Assembly: GCA_038496445.1 (NCBI GenBank)
Contig: JALMLS010000204.1
Span: forward strand, 124,001 to 188,000
From: Trichosphaerium sp. ATCC 40318
Taxonomy: Eukaryota > Protista > Tubulinea
Direction of reading: 5' to 3'
DNA: 64,000 nucleotides
Part shown: piece by piece, positions 123-50,777 of the stretch
Layout: each line of letters begins with the position of its first letter
Position numbering within the stretch: position 1 is the first letter of the stretch
Program-made: the position numbers and the translations under genes
Notes under the pieces: model-generated
Database searches by the model: none
What the model was told of the DNA's origin: nothing
What the model saw: the letters and a program-made list of their open reading frames with translations, nothing else

Positions 123-1952
123 TTATACGTCATCAGTCAAGTCAGCTAGACCGAGATAAGCCATACGCTTGGCAAATATACGCCTGAATACAGTCTCTGT
201 GATGACTCTGATATTCTCAGAGTTTACAGCAATAGTTGGGTGAGTTACCACCTTGTTTCTCAATTCCTCATTCTCTATCTTCATTAAGAACTTTGTTGCG
301 AGGAACTCTATAGCTTCAGCAGGATCACTGAGTTTTCCTTTAAAGTCAGGGTAACGCTAATAAAAAATAAGAAGATATTCACAGATGAAACAAGAACAAA
401 AATGGGTGAAAAAGAGGAAAAAGATGCTTTGGTGTTTGTGTTTGTTAGTGCGTTGACGTTACCTCTTTGAATATCTTTACATTCTCCTCATCTTCAAGCT
501 TGTTACAAAATATGTCTGTTTTGTTCAAAAACAAAATCCAGTTACTACATACAGTAAGAATAATACGAACGGAGAAATTATAAAATAAAGATAAAATTAA
601 TAAACTGATTTTAATATTCAGCGATACTCCAAAAATATTTTTTCTGCTACTAAACGTACCCCATATCTTCGCCGTATGTATTGACGAGCCCAGCCCAGGT
701 ATCCAAAGAAGTTTCCAATCTAGTTTGCTTCTTACTACTCTCAACGTACCTGTCAATAGTATTGAACTCATTTATGGCGGCTACGAAGATGACAGCGCTT
801 ATATTTTCTGTCAAGATACGTTCCCTGTTTGAAGAAAAATCAACAAAAACCGTTAATATCTCACTTTACTTACCACTTGCGACGTTCAACAGGTTGACCA
901 CCAGCGTCAATAACCTCCCAGAAGAGTTTTTTACGCTTAAAGCGAGCCCTAATACATGTCAGACGCCAAAACAACGCTTTGAACAAAAAAAAAAGTAAAA
1001 AGAATAAAAAAAGCCGTAATTACCTTGTAATACCAAGAGTACGTTGTTTGCAGTTTAGGATATCTTCATCTGATGGCTGGTAATCCATAGAGAGTACTTC
1101 ATCACCTTTTTCAACAAACTTATGAAGAGTTGGTATTTCCTCGTGTGCGCCTGGTTGCATGCAAATCTGTTTAAATTGTTTGTCTTGTAGTAACTCAATC
1201 GCAGCTGTCAATAACTCTTGCTTCTCATCAACACCCTCTGAATCTGGTGTATCACGAACTCTAAAAAAGAGGTTTAGCTGATTGGACTGGTTTTGGTTTT
1301 TTTTTTGTTGGTTCGGAATAAAAATCGTAATAACAAGAGCGTAAAGGTAGTGATAACGTGTTGGGCAGTTTGTTGGGCAAAAGGACCAGAAAGATGCTTT
1401 GGCAAAATAGGAGTTCTTTCTATCGAATTTGCCAGTACAGAAAATGGAATATCGATGTATGCGGAAGTGTTGGAGCTTCTTGCCCGGAAGTGGTACATAA
1501 CGCCCAAAAATGGAGGTACACATAGGAGTAGTCAAATTATTGTACCTGAAGCCGCGAAACAACTTGTGGGCGTCGGTTTCCTTTTTACTTTCATAATTTT
1601 GCAGTAAATCGTCAAAGGCTATAGCATGAAAGGTTAATGGGTTATAAAAGTACTTAAAACTCGAAGTGATTGAGCCGAAAAGCAAAAAAAAGTTTGTAGC
1701 GCAATTGCTTGCCTGTGTACATATTCCGCCATATGATCTCCCTGAAATTAAGTATCTCGTCTTGCGAAAAAGCTCGTTGACCACTCTTTGGGTTATGCAA
1801 AAGACGCAATTGTTGGGTTACTGTTGATTTACCACTTCCACCAATACCTATCGTTTTATTAAAAGGATAAATTAGATGTGGATTAGTTTACCGAGCATAA
1901 CAATACGCATTGTCTTGTCCTCAACATTAGGTGAAGAAAAGCAAATGCCCAT
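123..1952 (-). CDS. Heterotrimeric G protein alpha subunit (multi-exon)
   Basis: Spliced translation MGICFSSPNVEDKTMRIVMLG|IGGSGKST (P-loop), LNCKQRTLGIT (switch I Arg/Thr), IDAGGQPVERRKW (G3), LFLNKTD (G4), and C-terminal ...AYLGLADLTDDV*. MG-x-C start fits myristoylation/palmitoylation. Confidence 0.95.
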
Positions 1953-3271: not shown

Positions 3272-6043
3272 ATGCTGAAGGGGTGGAGAAAGAAGAGGCG
3301 AAATAGGACCAATACGACTATCGAAGAGCCTATTACAGAAGAAATAAGCAGTTCGAGCTCAAGCGTATTGTCGTCGCCTTCCCCACGAAGTAGGACTGCT
3401 AGCAAGCCACGAAAGAGTCGCAAGGGAAGCAAAAGCCCAGGCCACAAAACACGCAAATCAAAAGGAACTAAAAACGCAAAATCTAAGCTAAGGAGTCCAA
3501 AAAAGCGCTCAAAACAGGCTGACGTTATTCCCGAGGTACATTTTGCTGATTTACAACTGTTACAGAAAATACCACGCATTCAAGCTTTAAAGTGGCTCAT
3601 ATTATACAACTACTATTTTGTAATTTGTTTTGGTATTTCACCCTGTAAAAAGTTTCATTTTTGATCAATAATTTTTTTTACCCCTATTGCGTATGGTTAA
3701 TAGTCTATTACCCACCGTCTTATTGTAAAATTAACTGTTACCCCAAGGCAATAATTGTAGAACCAGAACAAGAGAACGAAACTGACAACGCAGCAAGCCA
3801 TGAGTCCGGCGTACGTCCGATATGTCAAACGTCAAGCGAGCTTAAACGTCATGTAGGTTCAGGATAATAACGACAACCACGCGCCACCAGTGCAGCCCGT
3901 TGAGGAGGTCGTAGAAGAAGAGGATGAACCTTCATTATCTTCTGATTGGGAGCGCGAATATCAGGAAGACGAAGACGAGTACTCTTCGCAAATGGAAGGG
4001 GTAAACGCACAAACTTTTGTTTTTTTGTGCTTTTTGAAAAGAATTAACCACAAAAATTTTTTCGTTATTAACGCAATCGTCCAGGAGGACTCTGACAGCG
4101 ATATTGATGATGACTTCTGTGGCGCGTACGATTTTACAAATTCTCAAGTAGACGACCTTGGAGAAGAGTTTACCTCATTGTCTCCGGAGGATATAGTAGC
4201 AGCACATGATAAACAGATTACGGTACGTGAGGTTTATTTGAAAAACAGCAATAAAAATTAAAACCATTTGGAGCAAATCTACAATTTTTTTTTCAATTAT
4301 TGTAGAACGAAAGTACACTAATTTGTCCTTTATTTTGATGACTTTCGCAAAACGCGAAAATAATTCTAAGTGTTTATTAGGAAGTTGCCGAACTACTTGC
4401 TATTCCAGAAGCTACCGCAGGAGCCATGTTGAGATATTACAGATGGAAACAAGAATCTTTACTTCGAGCGTACTTTGCAAATCCTAGTAGTGTATTAAAT
4501 GAGTCTGGTTGTGTTACTGTAAGCTCTAAAAAGAAAGTAACCGATGGGTACGCTTTTTTTTATTTTTTTCGATTACCTTTGCACAAAACTCCGCTGACGC
4601 GACATTTAGATCTAGTGTGTCCACAAAGCGAATAGACAAAAAAGGACCTTGCTTAATTTGTGGAGACGAAAAATTAGCTAATGAGTGCACTGCTCTTCGT
4701 TGTAAGCATAGATTTTGTAATAGCTGTTGGAGTCAGTATCTCGAAATGAAGATCGGCGAAAAACAGCAGGTAAGCAAGACAGTAACACAAAAAAAACATT
4801 CTGTTTTGATCCAAGTCGTTTTTTATTCCCCTTTCTTATGGTTTTATTTAGGCTTGTAAACTTTGCTGCCCTGCAGCAGGATGTAATTTATTTGTTGGAG
4901 AAAGACTTGTAAAGAGATTAGTATCTAAAGCTAGTTTTGCTAAATACAAGAGGTTCGTAGTTTCTTCTTGTTTTTTTTTCATTTTTTTTTTTCAGTAGAC
5001 TTGGATTTTCTTTGTTCCTTATGTTCTTGTTAGGTTTATTACACAATCTTTTGTTGAAGAAAATACGTATGTATCTTGGTGTCCTAGAGCCGGGTGTACT
5101 CGCGCTATATCAGCGGATGCTGTTGAAGGAAGTATAGTCAAGTGTGATTGCGGTTTTCGGTTTTGTTTTACGTGCCATAACGAAGCTCATCTTCCAGCGA
5201 CGTGTTATATGGTCCGTGATTGGAATAATAAATGTATAGATGACTCTGAAACAGTACGTTGAACGAAGGACAAAAAACCTTTACTCGTTAAAAACTTTCA
5301 CCTAACAAGTTTTTGTAGATTCACTGGATAGGCGCAAATACGAAAGACTGTCCAAAGTGTAGAATTGCTGTTGAGAAAAACGGCGGTTGGTACGTTTGCG
5401 ATCAGATTTTTCTGATTTTCATCAAGTTCTCCTTATTGTATCTCATAATCGATTTAGTAATCATATGACATGTCGCCAGTGTGGGTATGAATGGTGTTGG
5501 TTATGTAATAGACCATGGAAAGGACATAACGACTATTATACATGTAATCGTTTTGAAAAAGCACAAAAAAAATTGGATAAAAAAAAGAAAAAAGGCAAAA
5601 AACACAAGATTCAAAAAGAAGAAGAGGACCGAGAAGCACAAAAGGAGCAACTCAGTCGATATTTACATTACTACGAGCGTTTCTTGAGTCACGATCATGC
5701 TGCTAAAAACGAGAAAACGATCAGAGAGGCAGCTCAGAAGAAAATGCTTGCATTGACTGAAGAACACTCGACGTTGGCTGAAGTCCAATTTATTGAACGG
5801 GGGACAGAACGTCTTTTAGAATGCCACAACGTTCTTAAGTGGTCATACGCTTATGGCTATTATTTAACCGAGGAAGGGCCTAAGACGTTATTTGAATTTT
5901 TACAAGAAGAGCTTGAAAATACAACACAGAAGTTAGATGATATTTTGGAAAACCCAGGTGTCATGCATCGTGTTGATGCTGTTAACCTTACAAAGTTGGC
6001 TGAAACGCGTAAAAACAACTTGATGAATATAGGAAAACAATGA
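3272..6043 (+). CDS. Ariadne-family RBR E3 ubiquitin ligase
   Basis: Acidic N-region, RING1 (CLIC...[10 protein letters not shown]), IBR (WCPRAGC...[21 protein letters not shown]), RING2 (TKDCPKC...EKNGGC|[16 protein letters not shown]) and an Ariadne domain ([32 protein letters not shown]). Confidence 0.95.
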
Positions 6044-8313: not shown

Positions 8314-10163
8314 TTAGACTTTGTCAAAGAATATAGCCCGTAGTTGACCATCAGCAGTCCATAATTTTTCGACTCCTTCTTCTTTATCGTTTTTGAAATG
8401 ACAATGAAGACCTAGTTGGCCATTTTCATGCCACTCTTTGCATTCACCTTCTTTTTTGTCATCTTTGAAATAGAGTTGCACTTTTAATTGACCGCTTTCA
8501 TACCACTCTTTGTATTCACCTTCACGTTTGTCATCTTTGCAATGGTATTCAAATTGTAATTGACCACTTTCATACCACTCTTTGACTTCACCTTGTTTTG
8601 TGCCAGCAATGAAAGAGCACGTGTAAGATAATTTACCATTTTCATTCCACTGTTTGTGTTTACCTTCACTTTTGTCTTCTTTGAAGTATCCATGTCCACT
8701 TAATTGACCATTTTCATGCCACTCTTTGCCCTCACCTTCTTTTTTATCATCTTTGAAATAGCATTGCTGACTTAGGTTACCATTTTTATGCCACTTTTTA
8801 TATTCACCTTCTTTCTTACCACCTTTGTAACAGCATTGTATATAAGGCTGTCCATTCTCATACCACTCCATGCTTTCACCTTCTTTCATGTCATTTTTGA
8901 AATGACATTGTACACTCATCTGCCCGTTTTCATGCCAATTTTTTGCTTCACCCTCCAACTTGTCGTTTTTGTAACACAAAAGGGATGACATATATCCGTT
9001 CTCATACCACTCTTTGCGTAAACCATTTTGTTTACAATTGGCATAGGTTGTTTGGATGTTTAATTGTCCGTTTTCATGCCACATTGTAAGGTCACCTTCG
9101 TTTTTACCATCCTTGTAGAATCCTGTTACCCTTAATTGACCGCTTTTATACCATTCTGTTGATTCGCCATCTTTCTTTCCATCTTTGAAGTGACATTGTA
9201 TACACAATTGACTGTTCTCATAGTATTCTTTCCCTTCTCCTTCAAACTTATCATTCTTAAAGTTAATGTCCCGCTTTAGTTTTCCATTTGCATGCCATGT
9301 TTTGGCTCTTCCTTCTCTATTGCCTCTATTGCAATAGAATAGTTCCTTTAATTGACCAGTTTCATACCACTCTTTATGTTCACCTTCACGTTTACCATCT
9401 TTGTGATAGAACAGTTCCTTTAATTGACCGCTTTTATACCACTCTTTGGCTTGTCCGTCTTTCTTGCCTTCTTTAAAATACCATTGTACATCTATGTTAC
9501 CGTTGTCGTGCCACTGTCTATATTCACCTTCTTTCTTGCCATCTTTAACATAGCACTGAAACTTTTTAACTCCATTTTCATAATACTGTGTGCATTCACC
9601 CACTACCTCACCGTTCTTATAATAGCAATGAGAAGTCAAAATGCCGTTTTTATTCCATTGCTTGTGCTCTCCTTCTGCTTTCCCTTCTTTAACATTAAAT
9701 ATGCTGGAGAGAGTACCATTTTCATAAAACTCTTCTACTAGTCCTTTCTTTTTTCCGTTTTTGTAACTACGCCGGAAGACCTTATTGCTGTTTTTATAGT
9801 ACTCCTTCGTTTTAAAAAACTGTTAGAAAATCACGTGATAAAAACTAAAATGAATAAAGGTTCTTTAAACGTTCAATAGTGCCGCCGTACTTGTACAAAA
9901 TTATCTTGAGGCTCAGTGGAGTAGAATCTCAAAGGAGAGTAACAAATCATCTCACGTGAGTTATGAACATAGCTGCGATGTGATGGGCAATAGAATGGCG
10001 ATACATTATAATCTCTTTGCGTAGTTCTAAATCGTGGTAGTTCCACTAAACCCTTTCGATATCTATTGCACGTGGTTCTAGGCCGTGAGGCTACAATAAA
10101 TGAGCCTAAACGTGGTTATTTGTTACAATATTACTGAGGTCATTGTTACATACGCTGTAGCAT
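8314..10163 (-). CDS. MORN-variant (MORN_2/YwqK-like) repeat protein with putative mitochondrial presequence
   Basis: About 20 tandem 24-aa repeats (EGEYKEWYESGQL...YFKDDKK). Upstream exons (10163-10154 and 10105-9891) splice in frame to give MLQRSFIVASRPRTTCNRYRKG...SPLRFYSTE. Confidence 0.85.
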
Positions 10164-41390: not shown

Positions 41391-42965
41391 GTGGGCATGG
41401 AGGTGAATAAAAAGAATTGTTTTCAAATTGCGTCTGTGTCTGAATGTGTGAGTGTGTGGGAAGCGTTTATGGTTGAGGATGAGGATTGGCCATGGTTACG
41501 TAGTTGGATAGTATCTGGTATCAAGGTAGTACCAGAAGGAACGGTGGTGATTGAGTCAAAGTTAACTAACTCAAGCACGTGTAAAGAATGGGAAGAGTTG
41601 TTGTCACAAGATATAGAAAGGGAAGCTAAGTTGGGATGGATATATCCGTCAGAGATTGGGAGAAAGGTCAATAGGTTGGCAGTAGTACCTAAGTATGATG
41701 ACTATGGTAAGTTTAGAAACAAGATAAGGCGGTTGGTGTGCTTGAATCTTCCAGAGGGTATGTCAACAAATGATTTGGCAGATGCGCCAGGTTTTTCATT
41801 GAGGGCGTTTAAAGAGGCGATTGAATGGGTTAGACACCTTGGATATGATGTGGTGTTAGGTAAAATTGACATGTTCTGCGCATACAGGATGTTGCCCATT
41901 GCGCCAGAGGATCATGATATGTTTGGTTTTATGTGGAAGGGTATTTATTATCGAGACGGTCGACTACCATTTGGGTGGAATTGGGCACCTTGGTATTTTG
42001 TCAAAGTTATGAACATGATATCAAGGGCGTTTGCAAAATTGGGTTACAAGGCACATGTAGTGTACATTGATGACTGGTTGATTATTGCTAGAACAAAAGA
42101 GGAATGTGGGAAAGCAATGTGGGTGTTAACTCGTTTATTACGAGACTTAGGTTTTATTATTACAGAGGAAAAAATGGAAGGTCCAACTAAGCAGTTAATA
42201 TTTCTGGGGTACAAGTTGGATATGAACAGTTTGGAGATATCACTGACGGGCAAAATGAAAAGGAAGATTAGGGTTATGCTGGATGAAACCCTAAAGGCAA
42301 ATAGGGTTAGGGTTAAGGATTTACAAAGTGTAGCAGGTACACTTAATTTTGCAGCACAAGTAGTCTATGGCGGTGCTACATTCTTGAGGCGCATATATGC
42401 AAACATGGCTGGAACGGGTTCCAATAACAGATGGGTTAAATTGTCTAAAGGTTCCAAGGAAGATTTATTATGGTGGTCTAAGTTTATGGATATGTGGGAT
42501 GGGAAAGCAGTGTTAATTAAACCGTTGGAGAAGGTTAGCACATGGGTACAAACAGATGCGTCAGGGTTTGCAGCAGGCGCTTTCTTTGACAACCAGTGGT
42601 TGGTACATAAGTTTGTTGGGAAAGAAAAAGACTGGCATATTGGGGTTAAAGAGCTTTATGCTTTTTGGATGGCTGTAAAGGAATGGGGTCATTTGTGGAA
42701 AAATAAGGAACTAGTCAATGTGTTTATCGACAATACAGGCACAGTTTCACATGTGAAGAAATTGGTGGCCAAGAAAGAAGTTTTTATGGGGTTTGTGAGA
42801 GATATACAAACATGGTCAGCGGTGCACAGGTTTAGACTGTGCCCAAAGTATATTAAATCGGAAGAGAATGTGTTGGCGGATCCACTCTCCCGGCTTAAAT
42901 TTGGTGTTTTCCGAAAGGAGCTCAAAAAACAAGGGATTTTTAAGGTGTCTGGTAGGTTCATTTAA
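41391..42965 (+). CDS. Reverse transcriptase / RNase H (DIRS-type)
   Basis: KIDMFCAYRML, RLPFGWNWAP, VYIDD and FLG in RT; TDAS, KELYA, IDN and NVLADPLSR in RNase H. Confidence 0.96.
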   Translation: MGMEVNKKNCFQIASVSECVSVWEAFMVEDEDWPWLRSWIVSGIKVVPEGTVVIESKLTNSSTCKEWEELLSQDIEREAKLGWIYPSEIGRKVNRLAVVPKYDDYGKFRNKIRRLVCLNLPEGMSTNDLADAPGFSLRAFKEAIEWVRHLGYDVVLGKIDMFCAYRMLPIAPEDHDMFGFMWKGIYYRDGRLPFGWNWAPWYFVKVMNMISRAFAKLGYKAHVVYIDDWLIIARTKEECGKAMWVLTRLLRDLGFIITEEKMEGPTKQLIFLGYKLDMNSLEISLTGKMKRKIRVMLDETLKANRVRVKDLQSVAGTLNFAAQVVYGGATFLRRIYANMAGTGSNNRWVKLSKGSKEDLLWWSKFMDMWDGKAVLIKPLEKVSTWVQTDASGFAAGAFFDNQWLVHKFVGKEKDWHIGVKELYAFWMAVKEWGHLWKNKELVNVFIDNTGTVSHVKKLVAKKEVFMGFVRDIQTWSAVHRFRLCPKYIKSEENVLADPLSRLKFGVFRKELKKQGIFKVSGRFI

Positions 42966-44415: not shown

Positions 44416-44486
44416 CAAAAAAATAAGCGGTTTTACTCGCAAATTGACTATTAGCGACTACGAATGGCTCCATTGGCACGCAAACC

Positions 44487-45888
44487 ATGTCGCGCGTTCG
44501 GGTTCACCTTATGGTGCTTCCAATCGAATTACAAGAAAAAATCGCGCGGTATTTATCAAAAACGCCTCTTGTCCATTTTAAACGAACGAATAAGCAGTTG
44601 TATAACATTTCTAAGCGAACGCCTGTAGGAAAGGTGCATTTAATAACTAATAACGTTTTTTTGACAAAAAAATGCTCCAAATCAACTTAAACGCTCAAAT
44701 AGGTTCTGAATCACGTATACAAAGCGATTTACCTAGTAAAACAACATTATTGTGATTGTCCTCCTTCTTTTACATGCAAACACCTACGAGAAGGCGTGGC
44801 TAATAACATACTCACGGATGTGTGCCTTGGACCTTCCAATCAAGTGCGACACGCAGAACTAATGAATTTTTTGAAAATGTCAAAAAATAACCGTTGAGCT
44901 GACTGTCCAAAAGGTTTTCGCAATTTGTGGTAACGAAGGGATCTATACACTTGATTTAAACACAGGAGATTTGAAAATGTCAAGGCGCTTTGTATCAAGG
45001 AAGAAGAGATTATTGTGCCTAACATACTCTCCATTACGTGATACTCTTTTTGTTTACAGTGATCATCGCACTGTTGAATCAATACCTCCCATAGAGAGGA
45101 ATGTATCATCTTCTGCATCTACTACAAAGCGTAAGTGAAGTACTTTGATATTAACCTTAAGCTTGCACGTGTTTGTCATTAATGGGTTATTAATAGAATG
45201 GTATTCGATGAGTTTGCAAGATGGATCAGAACATATTGTTGCTCTAAGTGCTTACTTTATGCATTTCTTTAACGTTGATGATGCTATCACTACAGACTCT
45301 GTCTATATAGCACCTACATTTACAACAGTACACGCAATGAGTAGATACTATCAAGGTGCATATATAGCCCATAGTACTCCACAAGTGTGTCATTTTGTAA
45401 AAGACAATGTGACGACTGTAATCACAACAGAAGAACAGATGGGTGGTTTTATTATTGTTTCTATGGCTGTTGATAATAATGGTACTCTTTATATGCTATC
45501 AAAGAAGGAAGGCGTACTACAATTGCATACATATATCGACGGTAATATTGTAAAACTCAAACTTGATATTTCTTTGGATTTGTTGAACACGTTTGACGTG
45601 AAACTCTTTTATGTTGGTCGGTACCTACTCATCAGTGGTGTTGCTGTCGGCCATGAAGTTACTGGTAGATGTCATCTTATTCGCATAGAACTCACGGTAC
45701 TGCGAAATACGCTGTGTAACGTATGAATTTAGAGCTAACTTTTCGTTTTTTCTTTAAAGTCGTTGGGACTTGGCAGAAAGGTTATGGATAAAAAACGCGT
45801 CTGGAGATCACACGGTGAAGTTAACATCAATAATAAACGACCTAGGATATCAGTTCCCAAAGTATCTCATAAGGCACGTGATATTTGA
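44487..45888 (+). CDS. F-box protein with SWIM-like CxC..CxH motif and beta-rich (propeller-like) region
   Basis: HLMVLPIELQEKIARYL F-box; exon 2 HYCDCPPSFTCKHL; later VFAICGNEGIYTLDLNTG and SMAVDNNGTLYMLS. It may continue into the next gene. Confidence 0.65.
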
Positions 45889-46015
45889 TCAAACCAATCA
45901 AAAAAGTAACAAAAAGGGACAAAAAACGTTTGTTTTTTGAGAAACTGGCGGTAAAAATGATTCGACTGTTTACACTCTTTACACTTCCCTACACCTTAAT
46001 TAATACAATATTAAG

Positions 46016-48684
46016 AGTTTTGGAGCGAAACCAAACACAGTACCAGCAAAGAAACCAGAAGTATTTACTATCGCTCAAGTAGTCAATGCAGGTGTTACTT
46101 CAGTAACCGTAAGGTACAGAGCACTTTTTTTTGTTTTGTTTCCAAAACTAAGTTCCAAAAAAACTCGTAGGGCAAGAGTCTTGAATGTTTCAGAAGTTCA
46201 ACCGACAGATTCTGGTCATTTTATAGACGCTAAACTATCTGATACAACAGGAACAATCACGTACGAAACCACCAAATTTTTTTACAAAACAAAGAATCAC
46301 GTGATCAGTGTCATTTCGCATTTTTTTCGCTTTCTTATCTTATTTTTCAGGTTTCGACTTTATGATCGATTTATTCAAAGCTTTGCACAGCTTCTGCGTG
46401 GTGTCAATAAGGTGCGAGTTCACATCACTTTTTATTTTGAGCTAGAACTATTTTTTGGTTTTTTTGAACTAGTTCAATACTTGTTGATGCTGACGTTGTT
46501 GATGCGCTAGGTTTTCTATATTGCATATGCTAAGCGTGGTAGAAATTCATGTTATTTATTTGCAAATAGTGCTACTAAAGTTTTTACACAAGAAGACGGA
46601 GAGGCGTTTCTAGGCGGTAAGCACAACCAAAGCACGATGCAAACTAATTTTTCTTAAGTGAAGCGTACCAACATGCCACCAATAGCACAGCGGCAACCGT
46701 TGCCCCTCCCACAGCAATTTCCTTGCGACAAAAATCCATTACCAGTTCCTAAGGTGGCGCCACTCCCAAAACCTGTTATGCCAGCCAAAATACCAATTAA
46801 GACACCGAAACTGGAAGGTATAAAAAGAGAGACGAAACAGACTCCTCAGGACTTCTTGCAGTGTTCCGAATCTCAATTTGCAGAGAGTGCTTGCTCTCTT
46901 GAGTCTATTGAACCCAATCATTTCTCAACACCAGATGCATATGAGTCTCTTAGAAGGCCAGCAGTGAGCTCAACAAAAAAGCAGAATTACTTATCATCAT
47001 TATCGTCTGCTGAATATCTCACACCTGGTGAGTCTATGGCTGCTGCTCAAAGGCTTATAAGCCCTCCTGAGGTTCAGTCACCTGAACCTGGACATGAGGA
47101 GACAACACCTGAAGGACAAACACAATACCACCAGGTATCTCAATACACCAAGGTTTTCGAATGTACGACAAAAAGTTTTGTATACTTAATGCTGATTCAA
47201 GTGGTTAGTCGCTCTTGTTGGCGAAAATAATCGTACAGGCTTCGATATCGATCCATCGCGATTAAGCGTAATGTTGGCACCTAGGAAGGCAAAACTCAAG
47301 GTTCAACGCAATACCGAAGGTGCATTCGAAGTAAGTCTTTTTTTTTTGCATAAATAATGAAGCAGTATTAACTTCTTATTTTAAAACAGGTGATGCTGAG
47401 CGATCGGGCTGATAACGTCATGGTCAATTATAATGATAAGCTCATGTGTAAGAATACTATAAAGTATACTGGAGGCGAAGGCGTTATACCTCGTGTGAAA
47501 GTTAAGATAAAGAATCCAAGAAGAGAACATAAATCATTGTCATCTGCGCCAAAAAAACCAACAAGTGCTGAACAACAGGAAATATGGACAAACGATGCTG
47601 CATCTCCACCACATAATCCTAGAAAGTTTGCCTTTATTGTGGCTTCATCAGTGCGTATTGTATGTTTTTTAAAAAAGTATTAATGGGTTTTGTGAAGAAG
47701 CATCAATATCTACCTGACCTTGGAGACGATTGTGTTGTTAGTTCTCAACTTTTAATGGTAAGAAAAAAATGAGATTGAATAAGTTTTTTTTGGTTTTTCT
47801 TTCATTTGGGATTTTGGTTGACACGTGACAAATGGATATTCTAACACATTTTAATTCTAATATTTGGTTTTGTTAAGGGCCGACTTGAAGAATTAGGGTG
47901 GTTTGTTACGATAGTGGAAAATCCTTCGTCTTTGAAGTTCGATGCTACATTTGAAGAATTTATAAATTTATTGCCTGTTGATGCAACTGTAAGTCCCTTG
48001 TATTTTTTTCACTTTGACGTTTACTAATGTATAAAATAGGTACTACTCTCTTTTACAGGATATGGCTTACATACAAAAAATAGAGTACGTCCAAAGGAAT
48101 AAAGTAATTTGTTTTCCTCTTTTGACATTAATTTTTCTTGTTTAGGATTGGCTTTGTTTTAGCGATACTGATTTAACCTCAAGTTGCGCTGGTGATGTTG
48201 TTAGGCCATTAGCTCATATTCTCGCGAGTACTCGAGCAAAGAGCCCAAAGGTAAGTTCATTGTTTGTGAAAGAATTTGACGGTGATTAATCTTTCTCACT
48301 AGAACACCATTCTCTTTTGTGATGTTGTTCCGCCTGAGAGATTCAGGTACAGCTTTTCTAACCTTCAACTCTTTTGGCTTTTCGACAAATAACCAACCAT
48401 TTAATAGGCCAGTTAATGGACCAAGAATTGCTAAACCAGGATTGTTTTGCTTAGGCGCAGGTAACCTTAATTTAGAAGATGTTTTGTTAATTTTTTTATT
48501 TTTAGGATCTAGTAGTAACAGCATTCCTGGGAAACTCACGGATGATCTTTGTGATAATATTAAACGTGGTATGTCACTTGTTGATGTTTGTCGCAATGTC
48601 CGTAAAACTGTCATGAAGTCGGCAGGAACAAGGTTAGTTGTACCTTGGAATTTCTCAACAATGACTGAGAACGTGTATTTTTAA
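46016..48684 (+). CDS. OB-fold + Pro-rich linker + catalytically inactive caspase-family (C14) domain; start unresolved
   Basis: VTVR|ARVLNVSE...FIDAKLSDTTGTIT|FRLYDRF is an RPA-type OB fold. The C-terminal region reads RKFAFIVAS...RLEELGWFVTIVEN...VLLSFTGYG...ILFCDVVP...VRKTVMKSAGTRLVVPWNFSTMTENVYF*. Confidence 0.7.
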
Positions 48685-48847
48685 ACAATAAAGACATTGG
48701 TATTACTAGCTTCGATTTTGATGTCTTAACGCACCTAAGCGAGCACTGAACTACGGCAGTTTTCCTAAAGGAAAAAAAAAGGAAACAATGCCTAGAAGGC
48801 CAACGATAATCAGACAAGTAATAAACAGTACTTTTTCTTACTCTTGC

Positions 48848-49325
48848 CTTTTTTGTCGACACACAGAAACTGGCTTATCACGCTTTAAAAAGGCTGTAGA
48901 TTGTAGTGCGAAGGTTTTTAGGGCGTATTTGCTACTGGGCGTATAATCGAACGAAAAGTGCCGTTTTATGCCTGTATTCAGCAAATACGCTCTAAAAACA
49001 CTCGCCATTCGCTAAAAATTTGCGTTTTCTGAACGTAAAACAACAAATATACACCAAAAAAGAAACCCGTTTTGTTGTGTGACCCAAATTTCGTTTTCTA
49101 TTTTGTTTTTTTGTTTAAAACGTGAGCAAAACGTCATCTGCAGGCCTGTTCTTGTAACACATCATCTATTGTATCACTTTATAATACATAGGTGGTGACA
49201 AGAACAGACTTAGAGACTCAACAGCGCCTAATTTTCTTCGGTGAAGTGCTCTAAGTTGCACCAGAAACAGTGTGTTTTCTTTGAAAAAGCAAGATAAGCC
49301 AGTTTCTGGTGTGTCTACAAAAAAG
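48848..49325. repeat. Fold-back region: about 33 bp outer inverted repeat enclosing three hairpins
   Basis: 48848-48879 is the reverse complement of 49293-49325 with 1 mismatch and 1 indel. Hairpins lie at 48908-49005, 49133-49217 and 49257-49313. Confidence 0.8.
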
Positions 49326-49578
49326 TGCTATCGAAAGAAAAAGCCCAATTCACCACTCGTTCGTTTTTAGGACCTAATTTACTCGTACTACGTACTCGTT
49401 AAATAAACGGACCGAAAAACTACTCGTTGCAAAAAGGAACACTATCATACAACAAAAAAAAGGTTTTGTCCAAATTTTACTTATACACCTACATTGCTTT
49501 TCTCTGGTCTACAACAAGCGTCCTTATACTGTACGTTTAGTATACGTATTCTTTCTCTTCTTCTTCTCCTACTAGTAT

Positions 49579-50777
49579 TTACTTGTCTGCTGTGCTCGCC
49601 TTCGCTTGAGACTTTCTACGTGTGGTCTTTTTCTTTGGTGGACCAGCTGCTTTCGCTTTACGCCATAGATTATTAAAATACGCTCTACTCGAGTAGTCGT
49701 TATCGTTATCCGACGCCTCAGAAACGATTAAACCTAGAAGCCATGATACAGCAGGGTAATCATTAGCATTTGTAGCATCATAGAAAGGCCAGTGGTTATC
49801 AGGGCTAGCAGAAGGCTCTACAAACAAGACAGTCTTATCCTGACTTAACGCATCGCGGATTTCGTCGATTAAGTATTTTGCGTCTGTGTCCTCAAGCATT
49901 GTGATGTAAGGCAAGTAGAAGTAGTTATAGAAAGCATCTTGCTGATCCCATATGTTACCATCGTCGTCTGCTACCCATCCCTTGAAAATATCTGTTTGTA
50001 CGTAAGGAACGCGTTTTTTAGCAATACTGTTGCTCCAGGCGCTTGTAAGGTCGGTACTGCATGACTTGAAAGCTTTGTAACATTCGAATATTCCCAATAC
50101 TGATGTACTCGTCTTTTCATCCCCATCATACATGTATTTTACTTCAGTAATAGGAAAGCGAGGGTTTAGAGTGACCCATTGACATTTATCTTTCTGGGTT
50201 TCTGCCTTTGGTGTGTTGGTGACTGTCAAGTCTACAATCACTATTTTATCATCGTCTTCATCAGGATCTAAGAGCTAACCATGCGTTAGGAGGTATTTGT
50301 AGTGTTTTAACGACAGGAAAAAATAATTACGAAAAAAGAACCGTTAGAAATTTGAGGTTGGTTCTATGACGCTAAATACACATTCTAGGATAGTGGTAGT
50401 ACCTTTTTAACGCGTTTTACGCCCGAACGTGAGCAAACAGCGATTTTGCAACCGTCTTCGTTTTTAATCCACAAGGGTGTTGCTGGCGTGCTTTTCTTAC
50501 TGCGAGTAGAAGTACGACGAGCGGTTGATCGTACACCAACTAATCGTTTCCGTCTTATTTTAATGCGCACTAGCTCTTCCTGCATCCTCTTGAGCTCTGC
50601 TTTGGCGTATTTGACCCGTTGAAGAGCAGGTGTTTTCCCATTGGTTAAAACATGCGATTGAGTCTCTACAACAACCTTCAATGCCCTTTGTGAGATTTCG
50701 TCGCATTTTAGAATGATTCCCATCAATGATGGTTTATCATACGTAATATCCATCTCATCGCCTGAGCCATTTGACAT
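49579..50777 (-). CDS. Divergent DUF6939-like protein with N-terminal helical/basic extension
   Basis: KIAVCSR...IVIVDLT...WVTLNPRFP...STSVLGIFECYKAF...QQDAFYNYFYLPYITMLE...LIDEIR...KTVLFVE follows the motif order I recall for DUF6939. One intron at about 50270-50402. Confidence 0.6.

Follow-up and report, generated by a model that had tools for sequence, protein, structure and literature searches.

Caspase-family domains that have lost their catalytic residues are known regulators, examples being cFLIP in animals and the Tyr-Ser pseudo-orthocaspases in bacteria, and how such dead domains are targeted outside animals is mostly unknown. A locus of the amoeboid protist Trichosphaerium sp. ATCC 40318 raises this question for a eukaryotic gene whose layout we did not find described in the literature searched. 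We analysed 64,000 nt of its genome (positions 124,001 to 188,000 of the forward strand of contig JALMLS010000204.1, assembly GCA_038496445.1; hereafter the window, in whose numbering all positions are given), in which an inspection of the letters alone, here called the sequence-only reading, had placed at 46016-48684 an oligonucleotide/oligosaccharide-binding (OB) fold fused to an inactive caspase-family (Peptidase C14) domain. Do the two lie on one protein, does the C-terminal part belong to the caspase family, could it still cut, and what might the combination do? Both domains are encoded by one expressed gene, and its product is most likely a pseudo-caspase adaptor tethered to a predicted nucleic-acid-binding OB fold.

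One mRNA joins the two domains

The DNA of the locus is eukaryotic, AT-rich (~38% G+C) and interrupted by very short introns. Contigs from four public RNA runs (X1-X4) were aligned to positions 45000-49400, and a single 2031-nt contig from X1 matched 45640-48705 on the plus strand with zero mismatches and 15 joints. It defines 16 exons, the first eight at 45640-45696, 45760-45873, 46016-46113, 46171-46260, 46351-46411, 46511-46616, 46659-47162 and 47209-47330, and the remaining eight at 47390-47650, 47698-47757, 47878-47988, 48040-48084, 48146-48250, 48303-48346, 48408-48460 and 48506-48705. Contigs from X2, X3 and X4 each confirm some of these 15 joints. Fourteen of the 15 introns are GT-AG introns of 42-120 nt. 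The remaining one (45874-46015, plus strand), which at 142 nt exceeds all others, was aligned as a joint from 45869 to 46012 with four ambiguous letters, and a shift by +4 gives GC..AG ends. The locus is thus a genuine, expressed gene of 16 exons, and the eukaryote it comes from is intron-rich. The assumption that the OB and C14 exons share a transcript, for which the RNA offered a direct check, is borne out: the one X1 contig joins all exons, and the OB fold and the caspase-like domain belong to one mRNA and one 642-aa protein.

The spliced mRNA contains one long open frame, which runs for 642 aa from the first in-frame ATG (45784-45786, plus strand) through 15 coding exons, the longest contributing 168 aa, to a TAA stop at 48682-48684, directly after the tail RLVVPWNFSTMTENVYF. 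An AATAAA lies 3′ of the stop at 48687-48692 (plus strand), and the RNA contigs terminate at 48705/48706. Two splice sites depart from a naive reading of the sequence, namely those of intron 47163-47208 and of the GC-AG intron 45874-46015. A gene model built from the sequence alone, with its start at ATG 45957 and an intron at 47135-47201, was overruled by the RNA joints. Likewise, position 46016, given earlier as the beginning of the unit, proved to be a true exon start, being the acceptor of the GC-AG intron, but not the beginning of the gene, as two exons lie upstream of it: the mRNA begins at 45640, with its start codon at 45784.

The 5′ leader (45640-45790) holds two short out-of-frame upstream open reading frames with ATGs at 45653 and 45669. 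The latter crosses the first intron and ends just past the main ATG (45784), a layout known from termination-reinitiation control.

An RPA70-like N-terminus and a caspase-family C-terminus

Four exons (46016-46616, plus strand) encode residues ~31-148, and for residues 31-150 hmmsearch and hhalign both indicate an OB fold like that of DNA-binding domain A (DBD-A) of RPA70. The reference sequences came from a degenerate DNA pattern for GEIRATAFN, which retrieved 103 eukaryotic RPA70/RFA1 loci from metagenome contigs. Against a profile of 34 RPA70 DBD-A segments, the OB region scored 15.6 bits in hmmsearch (p=5e-7, as a single comparison), and hhalign aligned it to DBD-A over 100 columns with P=7.8e-7 and a probability of 92%. 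The hhalign score of the N-terminal 120 aa against DBD-A was 41.3, as compared to 12.7 +/- 3.0 for 100 shuffles (maximum 26.6). A full-length RPA70 profile also placed the match on DBD-A, and in the per-domain comparison this domain stood out (1.2e-6), DBD-C (0.048), DBD-B (0.21) and DBD-F (0.95) giving no significant match to the OB region. The RPA-like OB fold that had been proposed for the N-terminus is thereby upheld, and the comparisons support residues 31-150 as an OB fold derived from DBD-A of RPA70.

In the RPA70 DBD-A alignments, Tyr97 falls on the Phe column of ATAFN and Phe138 on the Phe column of KQF, columns that we take to be those of Phe238 and Phe269 in human RPA70, the residues that stack on bases (literature numbering of 1JMC). 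Since aromatic residues align with both stacking positions, the OB fold could act on single-stranded DNA or RNA, and nucleic-acid binding by this predicted domain is plausible. One residue weighs against such binding: Thr93 stands at the Arg of EIRAT, presumably Arg234 of human RPA70.

The OB fold is followed by a linker of 168 aa (residues 149-316), encoded by the single exon 46659-47162 (plus strand). With 25 Pro, 17 Ser, 15 Gln and 15 Glu per 168 residues, it has the Pro/Ser-rich character ascribed to it beforehand. The exon had no Pfam match, and a search of 1.84 billion representative proteins returned no homologue, which fits a disordered tether. Between linker and caspase-like domain, a beta-rich segment (residues ~305-395; 47209-47510, plus strand) appears FHA-like by eye only. 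Its pieces gave no signal in Pfam, PDB or the ESM Atlas and no match to the C14 or RPA profiles, and two regex screens of 326 fetched loci returned no FHA reference sequences.

The identity of the C-terminal domain (residues ~435-642; eight exons, 47621-48681, plus strand) was examined by local profile comparison of the spliced model with fetched reference families. A GHG...DACHSG pattern led, in viral contigs, to a prophage caspase-family gene and from there, by protein search, to 146 PF00656 proteins; the same pattern in bacterial genomes yielded 102 distinct orthocaspase domains, and a related pattern 88 giant-virus type I metacaspases. With hhalign, residues 431-642 matched the 102 orthocaspase domains both locally (P=2.4e-6, probability 89%, 198 columns, score 43.3) and globally (P=5.6e-7, 208 columns), the scores of 60 shuffles averaging 13.8 with a standard deviation of 3.2 and a maximum of 32.1. 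A second bacterial C14 set was matched with P=6.7e-5 locally and 2.3e-6 globally, and 100 shuffles (14.1 +/- 2.5, maximum 22.3) never reached the real score. In cross-controls, the OB and middle segments did not match the C14 profile, nor did the C14-like domain match the RPA profile. The prophage-seeded bacterial C14 set (alignment A1) itself matches solved metacaspases, MALT1 and GSU0716, which indirectly ties the comparison to the caspase-hemoglobinase fold. As a soft lead, 51 of the 100 ESM Atlas clusters nearest to the last exon are Peptidase_C14 and 11 are Peptidase_C13, a family of the same clan. Membership of residues 431-642 in Peptidase C14, the scaffold that the sequence-only reading had recognised in the C-terminal exons, is thus supported by sequence profiles.

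Conserved family columns were then transferred to the protein by hhalign. The family G-H-G corresponds to G508-Y509-G510 within FTGYG (48052-48066, plus strand), which hmmsearch and hhalign place on FAGHG/FSGHG in three family sets. Hence the invariant catalytic His of the (S/A)-G-H-G motif is replaced by Tyr509 in every alignment. At the Cys site, CDVVP (48318-48332, plus strand), the family D-A-C-H-S-G reads D558-V559-V560-P561-P562-E563. The Asp is retained as Asp558, and the column of the invariant Cys (D-x-C-x-S-G / Q-A-C-x-G motif) is occupied by Val560 or, in one alignment, by a gap. The C-terminal tail RLVVPWNFSTMTENVYF (48631-48681, plus strand) aligns with the family Q-x-P-t-L motif as V628-x-P630, with Pro630 kept and Gln replaced by Val. 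All three departures and resemblances had been noticed by eye, and the alignments agree with them residue by residue. Framework residues D455, D523, G592, T595 and P630 are kept. Because Tyr509 and Val560 occupy the places of the catalytic His and Cys, the domain should not cut peptide bonds.

Alternative readings and the surrounding window

How far the gene extends upstream is the point at which a different reading survives best. An F-box/SWIM-like/propeller-like unit occupies 44487-45696 on the same strand, with exons at 44487-44633, 44703-44795 (or -44819 or -44843), 44899-45130 and 45197-45696. Exon 44487-44633 matches the Pfam F-box with E=8.4e-5, better than the curated cut-off. A CxCx5CxH motif 3′ of it is SWIM-like by eye, with Pfam silent, and ESM Atlas leads for the last upstream exon (45197-45696) point weakly to beta-propeller families. 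This last exon shares the reading frame of the OB-pseudocaspase mRNA, and its 3′ end is the donor that the mRNA itself uses, 45696. Added to the mRNA, the upstream exons give an uninterrupted open reading frame (ORF) of 974-990 aa, depending on which of three possible donors is used for one intron.

We regard it as a tentative and rather unlikely alternative that the true product is of ~980 aa, the F-box exons being spliced in frame to yield a substrate receptor of a Skp1-cullin-F-box (SCF) ligase whose OB fold and dead caspase domain select the substrate, and that the 642-aa form is an isoform from an internal promoter. The mRNA frame is open for 27 codons 5′ of ATG 45784, to the first base of the contig, and continues the upstream 166-codon exon through a donor that is in use, although frame agreement would arise by chance in one case out of three. 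A complete ORF with a Pfam-supported F-box can be assembled, yet RNA depth upstream of 45640 is 0 in all four runs, despite a depth of 37 for the X1 contig. Two out-of-frame ATGs are unusual for a dedicated 5′ untranslated region; on the other side, the X1 and X2 contigs both start at 45640, that of X2 with a single additional letter not matched in the DNA, as is seen at capped 5′ ends. Given this shared start and the lack of upstream RNA, we take the 642-aa form as the main product. The longer product is further disfavoured by a Ngaro-like candidate retrotransposon (reverse transcriptase domain by Pfam at 41391-42965) that lies only ~70 nt (44416-44486) before the F-box ATG; one may speculate that its insertion cut off or silenced the promoter of the F-box unit. 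More doubtful still is the idea that, at least in some conditions, the locus makes a ~980-aa SCF receptor in which an F-box is joined to the OB fold of RPA70A type and to the inactive caspase domain, its basic-residue pocket retained, as part of a lineage-specific expansion of F-box fusions. Such a receptor would act as a ubiquitin-ligase adaptor for Arg/Lys degrons or for proteins bound to single-stranded nucleic acid, and its protease active site would be a fossil.

With the 642-aa product as the preferred form, a second alternative concerns its C-terminal fold: the C14 similarity might mislead, and the region might adopt another three-layer alpha/beta fold (for instance TIR-like or otherwise Rossmann-like), for which a dead active site would be meaningless. 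Several results weigh in this direction and thus against our assignment. Identity to the C14 family is only 16-17%; hmmsearch gives the domain only 6-8 bits (p=1e-4 to 3e-4) and aligns no more than the His-site region; the profile of 88 giant-virus type I metacaspases was not significantly matched (hhalign P=0.04, hmmsearch E=0.07); and single exons were silent, with nothing relevant from Pfam on ten and from PDB sequence search on five. Set against this are a collinear alignment of ~200 columns with all family motifs in register (beta1, the S1-pocket Asp, G-x-G, D-x-x, G-x-F-T and Q-x-P), the agreement of two independently collected family sets at scores that shuffles never reach, and the Atlas lead, which from the last exon alone points to clan CD. 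We therefore hold a different fold to be improbable. Within the family, the lack of a significant metacaspase match suggests that the domain is closer to the orthocaspase/paracaspase side. The last alternative, proteolysis through a displaced dyad of His512 (three residues after the His site) and Cys557 (three before the Cys site), can draw on the presence of both residues within three positions of the canonical sites and on the retained acidic-pocket residues Asp455 and Asp558, but is very hard to credit, as the canonical positions are Tyr and Val in every alignment, the H-S-G flank of the Cys motif reads P-P-E, Cys557 aligns inside the beta strand preceding the active-site loop, and we know of no C14 enzyme with such a shifted dyad.

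Elsewhere, the window presents an ordinary eukaryotic gene neighbourhood, with no second caspase-family or RPA-like gene and no paralogue of the gene described here. Just 3′ of it, 48822-49115 is covered by RNA contigs of X2 (depth 11.5) and X3 (depth 7.5) with long loose ends at 48860 and 49115, which suggests either transcription of this stretch or sequence in common with an abundant RNA. Two short T-rich or low-complexity sites 3 kb apart, 46125-46142 and 49094-49115, are both touched by an abundant X3 contig of 2529 nt (minus strand, depth 50), which probably reflects shared simple sequence rather than a transcript of the locus. A 441-aa single-exon ORF at 8314-9639 (minus strand) carries MORN_2 repeats (Pfam E=9e-69); among the 120 matches listed, all are bacterial-type YwqK-like proteins of 25-46% identity. 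The ORF may have come from bacteria, or its repeats may resemble theirs by convergence. Further ORFs include one with DUF6939 at 49579-50241 (minus strand; E=4e-5, below the cut-off), an Ariadne/IBR ORF (RBR ubiquitin ligase) at 5387-6043 (plus strand) and one with a divergent G-alpha piece at 1020-1784 (minus strand). A search of viral contigs for relatives of the last exon of the OB-pseudocaspase gene found none. The pattern GGTCATGG...D-[SAC]-C-H-S-G matched ~100 giant-virus contigs. Every one of them carries a metacaspase-like ORF (250-340 aa), and metacaspases thus appear very common in giant-virus metagenome bins.

Proposed role and comparison with known systems

On balance, we consider it probable that the 642-aa protein, composed of an RPA70A-type OB fold, a ~170-aa disordered tether, a beta-rich segment and a dead C14 domain, is a non-enzymatic adaptor. 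The OB fold would bring the protein to single-stranded DNA or RNA, and the dead caspase domain would bind partners or dimerise, in the manner of cFLIP or bacterial pseudo-orthocaspases. Since Asp455 and Asp558 of the acidic pocket have been retained, this domain perhaps still holds Arg/Lys-containing peptides; alternatively, it might pair with an active C14 relative. The adaptor might serve genome maintenance or immunity, as the sequence-only reading supposed, or ubiquitin-dependent turnover; the nucleic-acid-sensing role of that reading draws on the identity of the domains and on the two aligned aromatic residues of the OB fold.

Judged by sequence, neither component is new in kind: the OB fold is of the RPA70 type, and the pseudo-caspase belongs to the orthocaspase/paracaspase side of its family. 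Full-text literature searches found no description of the two combined, which makes their combination previously undescribed in the literature searched. Orthologue searches, themselves weak, found no orthologue or relative of the gene. With a pseudo-caspase and an RPA70-type OB fold on one chain, single-stranded nucleic acid may be coupled directly to an interaction module of caspase fold, and, should the F-box exons join in, to ubiquitin ligation as well. The fusion would also offer a simple, testable model of what pseudo-caspases bind.

The N-terminal part resembles DBD-A of RPA70 (RFA1) in its significant, domain-specific profile match and in the aromatic residues at both stacking positions. 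Unlike RPA70, the protein has a single OB domain, without DBD-F, DBD-B, DBD-C or a zinc ribbon, and does not keep Arg234. With its OB fold attached to a pseudo-protease, it is not the replication factor. With SCF substrate receptors, the locus shares a Pfam-level F-box exon, positioned 5′ of the mRNA on its strand and in its frame, whereas no RNA in the four runs joins this exon to the OB-pseudocaspase exons.

For the C-terminal part, cFLIP(L) offers a likeness in concept: this animal pseudocaspase has a caspase fold without the catalytic Cys and acts by binding rather than cutting, but belongs to the Asp-specific subfamily of true caspases and carries death effector domains where the present protein has an OB fold. 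Paracaspases (MALT1, type 2) form an Arg/Lys-specific C14 branch in which the protease domain is C-terminal to non-catalytic modules and acts within scaffolding complexes (PMC5978004). The present protein is like them in the C-terminal placement of its C14 domain, in its acidic pocket residues and in that alignment A1 matches MALT1 structures. It differs in having no death domain, no recognised Ig domains and no catalytic dyad. The best profile match is to bacterial orthocaspases, among which inactive His-to-Tyr forms do occur, as the sequence-only reading had stated: Tyr-Ser variants with the catalytic His changed to Tyr and the Cys lost are described and presumed non-proteolytic (PMC6426788). 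They share with the Trichosphaerium protein a C14 p20-type domain, the His-to-Tyr exchange and the lost Cys. In contrast to these bacterial pseudo-orthocaspases, the protein has Val rather than Ser at the Cys site, and its gene is eukaryotic, contains 15 introns and fuses the domain to an RPA70-type OB fold through a long linker.

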